Shown piece after piece: positions 1,540 to 27,737 of a DNA stretch of 64,000 nucleotides. Under the pieces are notes generated by a model. The model had not been told where the DNA came from and did not search any database. It saw only the letters and a list, made by a program, of their open reading frames with translations. The translations under genes were made by a program, and so were the position numbers. Within the stretch, counting starts at the first letter, position 1; the number at the start of each line of letters is the position of its first letter. The DNA lies in the sequence record NC_061451.1; one strand, given 5' to 3'.

Positions 1540-3159
1540 TTACTCAGCCGGAGTGTAAGCGTTCGCACCAGTAACGAATGCGATTGCAACTTTCTTCTCG
1601 GTGGTCAGTTCAACACGCAGCGTGTTAGCGTCAACAAACACGACCTCATCAGGGATGATCTGATAGCCGGTATCATCAACGACGGTAACGGTACCGTATT
1701 TGACGCCTGCATTGTGTGCGAAGGTGTGAGTAGTGTTAGCCACGTCACCGCTTGCAGTTTTGTCGTACTGGTACAGCTTAGCAGCAGAACCGCTTGAGCC
1801 AGCAGCAATCGCATCGTCAACATATTTCTTGCTGACAACAGACTCATCAACCAGCGCTTCGGTGCCGGTCAGAGTAAGGGCTTCGACAGCGCCGCCTTCA
1901 CCAGCGATGAAACCAGCGCTTTTTAAGGCGTCTTGGTCCACGATGATTTTGCTGTTGGTAGTGTCCTGTTTCAGGCCAGTACCCAGAGCAGCGCCTGCAA
2001 TCTGCGCATAACCAACGCCACCATCAGTGATTGCCAGACCATCAGCAGTACGTGACAGAGTAGCGCCGTCCAGTTTAACGCGAGTAGCACCAGCGTTATC
2101 TTCCAGGCCACCAGCAGCGTCCAGCTTAGCAGTAACAGCGTTGCTAGTGATTTCGATACCAGCGCCAGTAACCACGTTAACGACGTTCGAAACTTTCTCC
2201 AAACCATTGCCTGGGTTGAAGTCAGAAGCGCCGCCGAAGGTAGTCCACTGAGTAGCGTCGAAGCGACGGTATTCTTTGATGCTCTTAACCCACGTTACAG
2301 CGCCACCAGCTTCGCTATCAGCAGGGTTGAAGACAACAACGAACGCAGTGCCATTGTAACGCACGATAGCGTTATCAACCAGGCCGCTGATAGTACCGAA
2401 GTTCGGGTTAACAGTGTCTGCATCGAGGATGATGTACTGCTTGCCGTTTTCCAGCACAGGGTCAAGGGTGCCGTCAGTCTGAATGTCATCAGAATCGTGC
2501 AGCCAATCGATACCAGCGATAGCGTTGTCAATGTCGATCTTACGAGCGGCATCGTTCGCGTTTGCAGGCGCGGCCAGGTTGGTGATGGTGTTACCGTCAG
2601 CGTTCAGGTCACCAGTCAGAACACCAGCGCCTGCGTCCAGCTTACCTGCCAGAGCAGTTTCGTTGGCGTCAGATTTGTTCTTGACTGCGGTGATCTGAGT
2701 CTGGATAGAAGAGGTAGCACCCTTCAAATAACCCAGTTCAGTTGCAGTAACATCGCTGGTTTCCAGAGTGCTGTCAGCGCCTGCAAACACAACGGCGTTT
2801 TCAGTCAGGCCAGACAGTTTATCCTGCTTGCCGCTGATAACTGTTTCAACGTGCTTCTTACTGACAGCAGCGTTATCTTCTGACGCGCTCTGGTCTGGAC
2901 CAGACAGCAGCAGATCGGCAGTCATGGCTACGGTACCGTCAGCGAGGATAACACCCTCTACAGAACCACCGCCTTCACCCAGCTCTTTGATTGCCGTACC
3001 GTCGAAGTATTTATACTTCTTGTCTGTGGTGTTATACCACATGCGCCCTTCCTGTGCGGCAACCAAGTCACCTACAGCAGGGTCAGCGGCAAGTTGTTCC
3101 GGGCGGAAGTTCTTGAGCTGGGCACCTAACATCAGTTCAATATTACCAGTACGCATCAT
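1540..3159 (-). CDS. Tail fibre/whisker-like structural protein
   Basis: 539 aa, Ala/Gly/Asp-rich fibre-type repeats (ANANDAARKIDID, GLEK...VVTGAGIEIT), coiled-coil segment, C-terminal HTFAHNAG domain. Confidence 0.7.
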   Translation of the reverse strand: MMRTGNIELMLGAQLKNFRPEQLAADPAVGDLVAAQEGRMWYNTTDKKYKYFDGTAIKELGEGGGSVEGVILADGTVAMTADLLLSGPDQSASEDNAAVSKKHVETVISGKQDKLSGLTENAVVFAGADSTLETSDVTATELGYLKGATSSIQTQITAVKNKSDANETALAGKLDAGAGVLTGDLNADGNTITNLAAPANANDAARKIDIDNAIAGIDWLHDSDDIQTDGTLDPVLENGKQYIILDADTVNPNFGTISGLVDNAIVRYNGTAFVVVFNPADSEAGGAVTWVKSIKEYRRFDATQWTTFGGASDFNPGNGLEKVSNVVNVVTGAGIEITSNAVTAKLDAAGGLEDNAGATRVKLDGATLSRTADGLAITDGGVGYAQIAGAALGTGLKQDTTNSKIIVDQDALKSAGFIAGEGGAVEALTLTGTEALVDESVVSKKYVDDAIAAGSSGSAAKLYQYDKTASGDVANTTHTFAHNAGVKYGTVTVVDDTGYQIIPDEVVFVDANTLRVELTTEKKVAIAFVTGANAYTPAE

Positions 3160-4745: not shown

Positions 4746-4753
4746 AAATTAGC
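4746..4753 (-). promoter_or_regulatory. Candidate late promoter GCTAATTT
   Basis: Exact motif 31 nt upstream of the 4714 start; recurs upstream of other structural genes. Confidence 0.55.
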
Positions 4754-23947: not shown

Positions 23948-24366
23948 TATTGGGCCCTCATGGCAAACGTAACTGACTGCGTGTTTTCCAGTTTAGGACA
24001 ACGCCAGTTGATGGTACACACATAGGTCTGATCGTACTGAGCGCTCATACCACACGTTGTCCGTACATCGGTAACGTCATCAGTCAACCCGTTCGCTGGG
24101 TCTTCTAGTGCGATACGCATGTAGGTTGCAATCCACTGCGCGGTCTTATCATCAAACGGTTCGAACAGGTATTGATAGACGTCAGCACCAAACGCTTCAC
24201 GCCATTTACGTGAACGCTTTCTCGTACCAACAACCATCAGAATCTTTTGGACGATGCTATCCATGTTCTGGACGTTATCACGAGGCTCAAGATGAATCCA
24301 TACGTTAACGTCACAGTAAACACGCTCGGAGACAGGCACGTCAATCAAACGAATAGCGATAGCCAT
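23947..24366 (-). CDS. Baseplate wedge subunit / sheath initiator (gp25-like)
   Basis: SIVQKILMVVGTRKRSR...FGADVYQYLFEP motif; position between PAAR and gp6-like genes. Confidence 0.8.
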   Translation of the reverse strand: MAIAIRLIDVPVSERVYCDVNVWIHLEPRDNVQNMDSIVQKILMVVGTRKRSRKWREAFGADVYQYLFEPFDDKTAQWIATYMRIALEDPANGLTDDVTDVRTTCGMSAQYDQTYVCTINWRCPKLENTQSVTFAMRAQ

Positions 24367-24656
24367 TAGCCAAATCTCACGTTGTTGCTGCCATTGGATG
24401 CGGTGTCATTGCACGTATTAGGGTCACCATTGCGTTGAGCAGGCTTACCGTTAACACGCACAGTCGAACTGGAGATAGCGTAGCCCACATGTGGTGGTTT
24501 CTTAGGTGCTGAGTGGGGTTGATACGCATCACCCTGACGCACGCTTCCCTTACCATTGATCATGACATTGGCTGAGGCTTGTACTGCGACAACAGGATAA
24601 AACCCATTGTGTCCTGTGGACAGGTCTGCGCCTAACCGAATTGCTTTCTGGCCCAT
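24366..24656 (-). CDS. PAAR-type spike tip protein (T4 gp5.4-like)
   Basis: AIRLGADLSTGH, VMINGKGSVRQGD...H, VRVNGKPAQRNGD..TC; His/Cys metal ligands. Confidence 0.85.
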   Translation of the reverse strand: MGQKAIRLGADLSTGHNGFYPVVAVQASANVMINGKGSVRQGDAYQPHSAPKKPPHVGYAISSSTVRVNGKPAQRNGDPNTCNDTASNGSNNVRFG

Positions 24657-24679
24657 TGTTATTCTCCTCTGTTAGGCAC

Positions 24680-24687
24680 AAATTAGC
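24680..24687 (-). promoter_or_regulatory. Candidate late promoter GCTAATTT
   Basis: Exact motif 23 nt upstream of the PAAR start, right after a terminator. Confidence 0.6.
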
Positions 24688-24701
24688 TTTATACGCGACA
24701 G

Positions 24702-24731
24702 AAACAAAAACGGGCAGCCTAATGGCCACCC
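24702..24731 (-). terminator. Intrinsic terminator closing the 24.7-26.0 kb unit
   Basis: Minus strand GGGTGGCC-ATTA-GGCTGCCC-GTTTTTGTTT. Confidence 0.8.
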
Positions 24732-24755
24732 GGTTCTTGCGCTTGGATTTTGTCG

Positions 24756-24917
24756 CTATTCCCACATCCCTCGAACGTGTGCCACTGTGCCCTCAAGCAC
24801 GTAGCCGGAATGAATAGAGGAAGGATAGACTACCTGAGGTCCTTCCTGTAACGATAACAACCGACCAAGCATTGCGATTGCTATCAGCGACAATATGAGC
24901 AGTACAATCGTCATCAT
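24756..24917 (-). CDS. Possible 53-aa small membrane protein (not in the ORF track)
   Basis: MMTIVLLILSLIAIAMLGRLLSLQEGPQVVYPSSIHSGYVLEGTVAHVRGMWE*; ATGA overlap with a 13-codon upstream ORF; no strong RBS. Confidence 0.4.
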   Translation of the reverse strand: MMTIVLLILSLIAIAMLGRLLSLQEGPQVVYPSSIHSGYVLEGTVAHVRGMWE

Positions 24918-25014
24918 ATCGTCGTTACTCTTCTTTTGGCCGAACGGTACTGCATGGTTTGATCAGATTACTCCGCTGCCTATCGTCCACGATCACTTAG
25001 GTTTCAGTTTCTTC

Positions 25015-25930
25015 ATCTCTTTACCGCCTGCGCTGCGGTCAAGCCGCACACCCTGCACACGGGTCTAACACAAAGGGGCGGAAGAACCTTTATGCTCGAA
25101 ACATGCACATGGCGAAGGAGGCCACGCATCGGTGATCTGCTGGTGTTAACACACTTTTAAGGCCTTTCGTTTGTGCACCATTCAAGAGACAGGGCCACCA
25201 GCTAGTGATCTCTTTAAGGTATCGCACTGACTTGTGAACAAGTCACGGGTTGAAAACTATACACTTCCATATGCGCATCGGGAGAAACGCATAAGGCTGA
25301 TGCACAGCTTTGACTAAGAAGGATTGCGCCCGTCGCCCGACTTCACTTGGGTATCGACAATCGCTCTCTCTTACTCCCTTGAGTACAGCGCAAGGAACAC
25401 TGAGTCAATGAGTAGTCTGCGGGTGTTTCTCACTAGAGGGTGAAAGCCTCTTAGATTCTTTATTCTGTACAGCACCTTAGTGGACTGAATCGCCCGCTGG
25501 AGCATCCAATAAGGCCCTCTCGGTTAGGCACCTTACTGTACAGAAAACCCGGGGAGTACGTTACCATATAAAACGACTCTCCCCAATGCATACCAGAGCG
25601 ACTTGATATGCATCAGGCAGTGAACGTTTGCAGAAGTTCAACTGCTTTGCTTCCCGCTGAACTAGAGCCACACCGTTGAGTCTACGGTCCACAGTAGTTA
25701 CATGCCTAGAGGATATTGCCTTGGAGTTTATGTCCTATGGAATAACCGGGCTCGTCGCGTCGGTGCCACAGCAATATTCTATCATGTGGTGCTGGGGTTG
25801 TTCCCCACATTATGCGATTGCTCGCAACCAGCTGGAGGTCTGCGTCCGATGAAAAGAATAACTAAGACGCAGATGAGCTTTTCAGAAAAAACGGCACACC
25901 AAGAAAATTGGCTAAACTTAGTGTGCGTAT
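25015..25930 (-). ncRNA. Candidate large structured non-coding RNA of unknown class
   Basis: ~0.9 kb with no credible ORF in an otherwise gene-dense genome; roughly 15 or more hairpins and nested stems; strand is tentative (minus-strand GCAA, GAGA and GTAA loops, but some G.U pairs favour +). Confidence 0.55.
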
Positions 25931-25973
25931 AGATATTACTATCTACAATTTTTATTTACAGATTTTTCTGAGA

Positions 25974-27737
25974 TTAGAATGCCTTACGTTCAACATTCGA
26001 ATAGTACGTTTCGTACGGCTCAGAATACAACTCAGGACCGCGCTGCGCACGCACAGTAACATAGCCTGTATGGCGATTCACTGCGGTGATTTCGATAGTA
26101 GGCTGTTTAGGCTTAATCGTGCCGTAGATAGGCGCGTTCATCGTTGGTGGGTCTGTCTGAATCTTGTTTACAGATTGCAGTGCAGCACCAGACAGCGTAG
26201 GGAACTTAAAGCGCAATTCAGCACGCGTGCGGCCTGTAGCGATCTTGATGCTACCAGCAGGCAGTTCAACGCCGCTTTGTTTCAGGTAAGCAGCGATGCG
26301 ACGACCAATACCCGCTAATTGGTTCTTAGCGACAGGGTCCATCAGACCATCGAAGCTAATGGCTGATTGCGGTTGATTCACTGACAGATGCATACCCGTG
26401 TTGAAGTAGCCTTCTGCGAGAAAGCGATACAACTGACGAACAATCTCAGGAGTGTTCTGTGCAATCACAGGCGTCAACAACTCAGGTGGATTGGTCTTCA
26501 TCGGGTCGCGGTATTCAACCTGACCTTGTGAGTAACCCATACTGATATGCTTAACACGAGGATAAGCAGACTGCAACGAACCAGTAGAGCGAATCAGGAT
26601 AGAGCCAGACTTCGCTTGATCATACAGTTCATCGCTGGTGGTTGTTGAGAACAGGAAGTAGTCGGTAGGCACAGCCATACGACCGATAGCTTCGATTGCT
26701 TTCGTCTGCACTTCTTTGATCGTCGAACCAAACACTACGCGGCTACGATTCGGCTGAGCAGTAGACACAGCGAAGAATGCGCCGTACACTACCTTCTGGT
26801 CTTTGACGATAGGCGAAGCAGACTTAACCTTTTGACCGCCTGGCAGTGGAGGTAGCTTAACGCCCACCAGCTTGCCTTTAGTGATTGCTTTGTTCGCAAC
26901 AACAGGCTTCAAGGAGGACAGCAGCTTGTTCAACTCAGACCCGTCAAGAATCTTCTCCAGCGGAACAACGAGGTTCTGCGGCAGATAGTGTTTCTTGCGC
27001 AACGTATAGATAACGGTGTCTTTCTTGATCTGTAGAGGAGTAGCCATGTTACGACCAGCTTGACCAACAGGCTGGAACGTATTCGCTTTGTCCTGACCAA
27101 CAGAGCCGAACTCTTTGTCAAACACAGACTGACCGATGATGTTCGCTGCACGCAGATGGCCACGCACGTTGAACACAATCTTAGGTTCATCTTTCATGCG
27201 CAACTCATAGCGGTCACGCGTCAGATAGACCATGCTGAACTTGTCGCCTTTCTCCAGCTCAAGGTCATACTCATCGTTAGCGTCATCGATAACAACTTTC
27301 TTACCCTGATAGGTAGCGTACACGCGAGCGGCAGCAGACTCCGAAGCAATCTTCAACGCTACGCCACAGTTAGACAGCGCAGTAGCATAGTTGGTTGCGT
27401 GGAACAGCGCGTCGTTCGATTCCGTGATAGCGACTTCTTTACCGCGTACGCCCAGCGCAAGGTGGATAGCGCTAGAGCTGGACATGAACACAGTGTGACC
27501 TGTATCTTCATGCTTACCAGCAAAGGACATACCACTAACACGCGAAATAGACAGCGCATTTAGGTGTGGAGTAGTGAACGTATCACCCGCAGCAAAGTCA
27601 AAGATTTCACCTTGACGCCACGCGTAACCGATGTTGTTTGAACTCAAGCCAACAAACGCATCACCCACCTGTCGAATCGTAGTAGGGATAATGCTGAGAT
27701 CGCGAACGATCTGATTTTGTTTCTGAATGATGGTCAT
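25974..27737 (-). CDS. Hypothetical protein, putative internal head protein
   Basis: 587 aa; ASESAA motif followed by the ~65-aa domain shared with 40431..41108, 49036..50148 and 56251..58197. Confidence 0.6.
   Translation of the reverse strand: MTIIQKQNQIVRDLSIIPTTIRQVGDAFVGLSSNNIGYAWRQGEIFDFAAGDTFTTPHLNALSISRVSGMSFAGKHEDTGHTVFMSSSSAIHLALGVRGKEVAITESNDALFHATNYATALSNCGVALKIASESAAARVYATYQGKKVVIDDANDEYDLELEKGDKFSMVYLTRDRYELRMKDEPKIVFNVRGHLRAANIIGQSVFDKEFGSVGQDKANTFQPVGQAGRNMATPLQIKKDTVIYTLRKKHYLPQNLVVPLEKILDGSELNKLLSSLKPVVANKAITKGKLVGVKLPPLPGGQKVKSASPIVKDQKVVYGAFFAVSTAQPNRSRVVFGSTIKEVQTKAIEAIGRMAVPTDYFLFSTTTSDELYDQAKSGSILIRSTGSLQSAYPRVKHISMGYSQGQVEYRDPMKTNPPELLTPVIAQNTPEIVRQLYRFLAEGYFNTGMHLSVNQPQSAISFDGLMDPVAKNQLAGIGRRIAAYLKQSGVELPAGSIKIATGRTRAELRFKFPTLSGAALQSVNKIQTDPPTMNAPIYGTIKPKQPTIEITAVNRHTGYVTVRAQRGPELYSEPYETYYSNVERKAF

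Follow-up and report, generated by a model that had tools for sequence, protein, structure and literature searches.

The window analysed here is a 64,000-nucleotide (nt) stretch of sequence record NC_061451.1, which is 100% identical to the Erwinia phages pEa_SNUABM_14 and pEa_SNUABM_7 (Snuvirus, ~265 kb). Throughout its first 50 kb, the minus strand carries all 50 of the 50 genes in the RefSeq annotation, with little space between them except in one unannotated gap of 1317 nt at 24657-25973; the next largest gap in these 50 kb measures 92 nt. This exceptional gap, correctly picked out in a preliminary description of the DNA, is the subject of this report. It lies between the PAAR spike-tip gene and gp123, and it holds what we regard, from sequence comparison, as a strong candidate for a large functional RNA of a new class. 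The RNA had been placed between baseplate and internal-head genes. The baseplate operon does lie downstream, but the internal-head label for gp123 is unsupported, as this gene, with its KMPT-N domain, closes a cluster with thymidylate kinase, nudix hydrolase and unknowns upstream. Family and solved-structure searches with gp123 gave nothing useful.

The candidate transcription unit is made of a 5′ boundary element, a structured core, a small open reading frame (ORF) and a terminator (Table 1). Read on the minus strand, the core of ~1.0 kb (25931-24918) comprises a pair of hairpins at its 5′ end, a multi-helix 5′ domain and two modules of ~110-230 nt that are paralogous to each other; invariant strands join these parts. 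The interval 25015-25930, to which the RNA had earlier been assigned, falls inside this element, but the element itself is wider and runs from 25963 to 24700.

Table 1. Positions of the candidate RNA unit, its parts and its neighbours in the window (bp, base pairs; aa, amino acids; E, expectation value).
Feature	Position	Strand	Remarks
Whole transcription-unit candidate	24700..25963 (1264 nt)	-	5′ element, structured core, small ORF and terminator
5′ boundary element, 32 nt	25932..25963	-	Starts 10 nt past the gp123 stop codon; nearly invariant in all lineages
First hairpin	25894..25926	-	Window's own fold; sequence differs per lineage
Second hairpin, helices 4-5	25839..25877	-	8 pairs, 7 changed on both sides (19-sequence consensus); sequence is lineage-specific
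5′ domain, model R2	25664..25839	-	Multi-helix with invariant joining strands; 20 homologues, E 1e-38 to 1e-59
Central hairpins, helices 17-20	25583..25650	-	Include the 12-bp helix 25616-25605 / 25594-25583
Module 1, model R1	25321..25504	-	First copy of the repeated module
Inter-module linker hairpins	25218-25308	-	Two hairpins, helices 32-33, at 25270..25308, plus the short hairpin 25229..25244
Short hairpin, helix 36	25229..25244	-	7-bp stem of the preliminary description; 4 of 4 consensus pairs compensatory
Module 2	24974..25209	-	Second, larger copy with an inserted three-helix arm; model R3 covers 24974-25158
Small ORF, 53 aa	24756..24917	-	Hydrophobic N-terminal helix; unannotated in the RefSeq record
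Hairpins in 3′ half of small ORF, helices 53-56	24758..24811	-	Covarying
Intrinsic terminator	24702..24744	-	Core stem 24732-24711, then T run
GCTAATTT motif	24680..24687	-	24 nt upstream of the PAAR start, directly past the terminator; neighbour, outside the unit
PAAR spike-tip gene	24366-24656	-	One border of the gap; baseplate operon downstream
gp123, 587 aa	25974-27737	-	Other border of the gap; KMPT-N domain
Earlier stems, conserved	25034-38/25044-48, 25139-44/25197-202, 25228-45, 25293-99/25305-11, 25587-95/25604-12, 25617-25/25636-45, 25813-17/25822-26, 25839-46/25866-73, 25894-99/25921-26		Match conserved helices
Earlier stems, own-fold or Snuvirus-specific	25435-39/25447-51, 25463-72/25536-45, 25551-56/25579-84, 25793-97/25803-07
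Earlier stems, replaced	25050-53/25061-64, 25024-28/25077-81, 25372-76/25381-85		Other covarying partners take their place

Comparison with relatives reveals a fold that has outlasted its sequence. RNAalifold predicts 248 pairs from 17 sequences, and 123 of these still pair after changes on both sides. An alignment of 19 sequences has 335 consensus pairs, 93.5% paired and 161 with double changes, whereas a slid control, in which the 3′ partners of the same sequences are moved by 1-3 columns, retains 35-43% pairing and 43-60 double-change pairs. For two regions, the alignments were built by covariance models before pairs were counted. The 34 pairs of the 5′ domain (25664-25839) are paired in 98.4% of cells and 20 of them have changed on both sides, a count that none of 500 shuffles reached and that compares with 1-5 in slid controls. 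The 3′ module (24974-25158) has 46 pairs, 94.2% paired, and 37 of these have changed on both sides; again the count was reached by 0 of 500 shuffles, and slid controls gave 10-17. Compensatory base changes span six lineages, and along the alignment invariant strands are interleaved with stems whose two sides change together. These base pairs have been kept by selection while the sequence of the unit drifted to an identity of only 54-61% between genera.

Individual helices differ in how their conservation appears. Helix 19 has 12 pairs, five of them compensatory, and is 100% paired in the 19-sequence consensus. Eight of the 11 pairs in helix 33 are compensatory, and its loop is conserved in Alexandravirus and in the contigs L051 and L059 described below. 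The closing helix of module 1 (25497-25493 / 25423-25419) shows compensatory changes too, and a covariation scan for pseudoknots and long-range helices added only the module-closing helix. The first hairpin, with its stem 25894-99/25921-26, belongs to the window's own fold; each lineage has its own complementary arms at the matching place, a lineage-specific compensation seen by eye in alignment A2, and the hairpin is missing from the consensus because MAFFT misaligns the region. The preliminary description had listed 16 stems. About nine match conserved helices, but four belong to the window's own fold or to Snuvirus only, and three are replaced by other covarying partners in the 19-sequence consensus. 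Relatives do not keep its GNRA-type loops as such, and its near-match to a late promoter (GCCAATTT at 25905-12) lies within a lineage-specific hairpin loop and is not conserved either. A 17-nt hairpin at 25435-25451 is inserted within module 1 in the Snuvirus lineage only, and a plus-strand terminator scan flags the same hairpin.

The alignment also tells the two strands apart. On the minus strand, its 19 sequences contain 835 G-U cells against 95 A-C cells, and when the helices are read on the plus strand pairing drops to 81.5%, compared with 93.5% on the minus strand. The excess of G-U over A-C and the loss of pairing therefore assign the RNA to the minus, gene-sense strand. Folding energy alone is weak evidence and not proof. 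The minus strand of the window beats its shuffles, with z scores of -4.4 (25015-25930) and -3.5 (core), and the plus strand gives -1.5 and -0.4; but two controls from protein-coding sequences (CDSs), at -1.0 and -2.0, overlap with such scores and some homologous cores are weak, so this measure is not decisive.

The gap had been described as free of any credible long ORF. Indeed, no frame goes beyond chance, the longest stop-to-stop frame having 88 aa against ~100 in shuffles, but a conserved ORF of 53 aa lies at 24756-24917. It is open in all lineages (47-53 aa), and similar peptides are found in Yoloswag gp109, SNUABM_5, JA11 and L047, whose DNA has diverged too far to align here. Some relatives have the homologue annotated, for example as gp112 of SNUABM_17 or gp109 of Yoloswag. 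Second codon positions are the least variable, with 237 differences versus 498 and 498 at the others, as expected for hydrophobic codons, and hydropathy reaches 2.3-2.5 over the first 19-residue windows. The peptide matched no protein family, and a solved-structure search returned nothing useful. On this comparative evidence the ORF is likely to be a real gene. Within its 3′ half, two hairpins covary, and the reading frame across them is not the same from genus to genus; this half is thus conserved at the RNA level. A small hydrophobic peptide ORF, as in type I toxin-antitoxin systems, is present; a plus-strand sigma-70-type promoter for an antisense RNA was not found in 24300-26400, in a scan that does not cover phage-specific promoters.

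The strong terminator reported at 24702-31 is confirmed on the minus strand. Its stem has nine pairs, seven of them G-C, and is conserved with G-C/G-U changes only. The RNA would end at this stem (24732-24711) and carry the 53-aa membrane-peptide ORF at its 3′ end. Its start may lie within the invariant 5′ element or shortly past it, or else the RNA may form the 3′ end of the transcript of the upstream cluster. The 5′ element was considered as a general promoter and rejected, since it has a single copy in the window and one per genome; apparent extra copies in L051 and L059 were dropped, as they fall inside the gp123 homologue. In L051, in the distant relatives and in clade 4 (two overlapping contigs that were analysed separately and not joined), the 3′ arm of the element is altered without compensation while its 5′ core CTGTAAATA is retained; therefore its sequence, not pairing, is conserved. 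It could serve as a dedicated promoter, or as a site for processing or for protein binding.

A different motif, GCTAATTT, is present at seven places in the window, each time on the minus strand (first base at 4753, 7955, 17909, 24687, 30272, 43415 and 58238). Judged by position against the gene table, five of the seven lie between genes, in a short gap immediately before the next start codon. The motif probably serves the phage as a promoter element of its structural-gene operons, and the copy at 24687 is the probable promoter of the baseplate operon. Between 30272, the nearest copy upstream of the RNA, and 25974, no convincing minus-strand terminator was found, which makes read-through of an upstream transcript a serious alternative to a start of its own.

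From the 5′ element to the terminator, 17 phages have units of 1208-1309 nt; L051 has one of 1299 nt and L059 one of 1041 nt. Sasquatchvirus (Y3), Alexandravirus (Alexandra, AD1 and many SNUABM phages) and the Snuvirus isolates all have a gap of 1267-1456 nt at this location. The unit is also found in IMG/VR contigs, in the metagenome contig L051 and in L059, which makes three metagenomic lineages in total. Its length and position are kept in 46 phage records plus the extra metagenomic lineages, and the gene order p144-p587-unit-PAAR is maintained in relatives. L051 and L059 were the two true homologues among 11 matches from scans of metagenome and genome collections with degenerate DNA patterns; among the other nine matches, L055 is a contig already in the set and the remainder arose by chance. 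L059 (JAVWLC010000001.1, 34.7 kb) is titled as a Raoultibacter metagenome-assembled genome. It has p144, p587, the RNA and PAAR in phage order, with 73-81% protein identity, and most likely comes from a jumbo phage whose contig was binned with a bacterial genome.

The two modules of the core are related to each other and align along their whole length. Model R3, made from module 2, matches module 1 in every genome with E of 1e-6 to 1e-12 (6e-10 at 25323-25435 of the window), and model R1, made from module 1, matches module 2 at 25116-25209 (E = 0.006). These matches imply that the duplication is older than the split of the genera. In L059 module 1 is absent, and in clade 4 it is shortened. With the speed filters of the search switched off, one copy of the module was also found 3′ of the gp123 homologue in more distant phages, namely Yersinia phage fHe-Yen9-02 (E 3e-8), Dickeya phage JA11 (E 3e-7), Erwinia phage SNUABM_5 (E 9e-5) and Yoloswag (E 0.005). 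The single-module genera or lineages are Yoloswagvirus, Rivsvirus, Salmondvirus and a Yersinia phage. The 5′ domain model R2 gave no match in these distant phages. The module occurs there without the 5′ domain, so the family spans at least seven genera or lineages, with the version in the window an elaborated one.

The distant loci have further features of their own. Unannotated gaps of 620-740 nt follow the gp123 homologue in L060 (5274-5984), L061 (5277-5900) and L062 (5283-6018). Each of these gaps has at least one CTGTAAATA motif, with two across the Yoloswag interval and four in JA11, and each holds a hairpin under strong conservation, which in the alignment by the module model corresponds to the terminal hairpin of the modules in the window. 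The record of fHe-Yen9-02 (OR620964.1) is linear and cut within the locus (L063 5268-5930, L065 2483-3479). Its ~1.66 kb from the gp123 homologue to PAAR are annotated with seven ORFs of 30-63 aa, and module matches lie on both sides of the cut.

Searches of Rfam 15 recognised nothing at this locus. At the gathering score there were zero matches in the 64-kb window, at E up to 10 only two chance-level matches in 24500-26100, and at E up to 1 zero matches in nine homologous loci. The RNA so lies outside the GOLLD, ROOL, OLE, HEARO and intron families, and no known ribozyme model in Rfam matches it. With compensatory changes in six lineages and no Rfam match, the proposal of the preliminary description that the gap holds a large structured RNA of an unrecognised class, on the gene strand and ending at the terminator, has held up. 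Papers on these phages (e.g. PMC7412058) and full-text searches make no mention of the RNA, an absence that is not proof of unpublished status. The RNA is apparently undescribed, and it is conserved, well delimited and marked by a clear evolutionary signature.

GOLLD and ROOL are the known RNAs that it resembles in general build. They often neighbour transfer RNA (tRNA) genes in phage or prophage DNA. Like them, the RNA in the window is large, multi-domain and phage-encoded, with strong covariation and invariant joining strands that alternate with variable covarying stems. It differs in being longer (a core of ~1.0 kb), in its duplicated modules and in matching no Rfam model. Furthermore, it is followed by a small peptide ORF, is hosted by jumbo phages of the Gram-negative Erwinia, Dickeya and Yersinia, and has no tRNA genes nearby: ARAGORN finds no tRNA or transfer-messenger RNA gene in the 64-kb window. 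Cryo-electron microscopy has shown that GOLLD and ROOL form RNA-only homo-oligomeric complexes (PMC12286853).

Other known systems share single features with the locus. OLE RNA acts together with membrane proteins and is encoded in the chromosomes of extremophilic Firmicutes. It is likewise a large structured RNA with a membrane link, which would here be provided by the membrane-peptide ORF fused at the 3′ end, but this is an analogy only, since no OLE model matches, OLE is not known from phages and the architecture differs. Type I toxin mRNAs, such as those of the hok family, also have a short hydrophobic ORF in a strongly folded RNA, hairpins overlapping the coding sequence and a terminator right after it. 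In contrast to them, the leader here is ~1 kb long and modular, the peptide matches no toxin family, and neither an antisense RNA gene nor a plus-strand promoter was found in the sigma-70-type scan. The pRNA of phage phi29 is well under 200 nt and its family is included in Rfam. As a phage-encoded structural RNA it is part of a virion-assembly machine, a role of the kind that the preliminary description had in view when it suggested that the RNA in the gap, transcribed late with the virion genes, could be a scaffold, a packaged RNA or a ribozyme, but no Rfam family matched and nothing ties the RNA in the window to packaging.

What else could explain such a gap? A decayed protein gene, or a tiling of real small ORFs, would fit the annotation of relatives, where 'hypothetical protein' CDSs of 40-158 aa are placed on either strand. 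These CDSs are, however, not conserved between lineages in position, frame or strand, and only the 3′ ORF of 47-53 aa is. Indels in the core between close relatives are mostly of 1 nt, with 13% multiples of three, and core mismatches show no lag-3 (codon) periodicity, so that, with the 3′ small ORF as the exception, the core has neither a conserved reading frame nor triplet indels nor codon periodicity. Translated searches with stop-free pieces of the gap find matches in every frame and on both strands, which reflect DNA conservation and not coding. Invariant strands alternating with covarying stems are a further point against coding, and of all the explanations we find this one the least credible. 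Almost as improbable is a function at the level of DNA, for example as an origin of replication, a site for packaging or an array of protein-binding sites. A long non-coding stretch in a packed genome, with a 5′ element conserved by sequence and not by pairing, might suggest one; yet DNA has no need of the strand-specific G-U pairing seen here, dozens of compensatory changes keep helices that are relevant only to a single strand, and the gap has no iterons, long direct repeats, or anomaly of composition or skew. Equally slight is the chance of a self-splicing intron, of some other known ribozyme or of a mobile element's RNA component. Phages do carry group I and II introns, the element is large, structured and intergenic, and an HNH endonuclease gene is present elsewhere in the window. 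Against this, the Rfam searches found no intron, ribozyme or other model; gp123 has its own stop codon and does not differ in length in relatives that lack the 5′ domain; neither the unit nor its immediate surroundings encode a reverse transcriptase, maturase or homing endonuclease; and the unit occupies the identical site in all genomes compared, with no empty site seen. At the level of sequence, these comparisons identify 25963-24700 on the minus strand as the gene for a large structured RNA, and as neither a protein gene nor a DNA-level element.

Given an RNA gene, the question becomes how its core acts. It may be a giant structured 5′ leader that controls the translation or stability of the membrane-peptide mRNA in cis, in the manner of the folded mRNAs that encode small hydrophobic toxins of type I or peptides that time lysis. 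The uninterrupted run of core, ORF and terminator, with no terminator between core and ORF, would suit such a leader, as would a short, hydrophobic peptide conserved across genera, a ribosome-binding site and start codon inside a conserved local helix, and the covarying RNA hairpins within the ORF itself. We nevertheless consider it unlikely. In Yoloswag the peptide gene is preceded, at ~35 nt, by a 5′ motif copy of its own, and the single module is ~1 kb upstream with other small ORFs between them; peptide and module are also separable in SNUABM_5. L059 lost a module and clade 4 shortened one, and both retain the peptide. Moreover, no covarying long-range pairing was found between the core and the start region, and we know of no regulatory leader near ~1 kb of duplicated domains. 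Because peptide and module can be separated in Yoloswag, and because module number varies between lineages while the peptide gene is kept, an autonomous RNA is favoured. By analogy with other large 'ornate' phage-associated RNAs, the core would then act through its fold, as a stable RNA or an RNA-protein particle during infection, rather than as a regulator of the peptide, an action towards which we lean by a narrow balance.

Overall, we think it highly probable that the locus is best explained as a large undescribed structured RNA gene, with autonomous action as the candidate mode. Several observations weigh against this explanation. With ~8 independent lineages in the alignments, significance is overstated by the shuffle controls, although slid partners fell short of the observed counts as well. 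Model-fitted alignments are biased towards the model's own structure, and folding z scores are unremarkable in some homologues (cores of Y3 -2.4, Alexandra -0.5, SNUABM_17 -1.3). No sigma-70-type promoter was found for the RNA, and a promoter role for the single-copy 5′ element is a guess; we infer the transcript, its ends and its timing from the DNA. In addition, the core in the window is physically the leader of the peptide ORF, which leaves room for a role in cis.

Few large structured RNA classes exist beyond ribosomal RNA, RNase P and introns, and those such as OLE, GOLLD and ROOL are each structurally unusual. A more ambitious proposal, which we regard as possible but put forward tentatively, is that PaBG-related Enterobacterales jumbo phages have a class of modular RNA of >1 kb that was built from a duplicated module of ~130-190 nt, forms a stable RNA-only or RNA-protein assembly during infection, and may be tied to the membrane via the 3′ peptide. 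If true, this RNA would be among the largest phage-encoded non-ribosomal RNAs. Cultured phages, a laboratory-tractable host, dozens of natural variants and a clear modular anatomy are practical assets, and the relatives provide a natural 'deletion series' with one or two modules and with or without the 5′ domain. With these, studies of structure and expression are directly feasible.

The locus also bears on the annotation of related genomes. Several small 'hypothetical protein' CDSs annotated within the RNA region there are probably annotation artefacts and not genes; such CDSs lie at 2472-2948 (+) in L010, 2370-2519 (+) in L004, 2211-2372 (+) in L011 and 2766-2909 (+) in L006. A separate basic ORF of ~40 aa, absent from the window, is present between the RNA terminator and PAAR in some lineages. 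It occurs in L007 (1375-1497), L013, L014, L060 (7286-7414) and L061 (7589-7714), and it is common to Alexandravirus members and Yoloswag/SNUABM_5.

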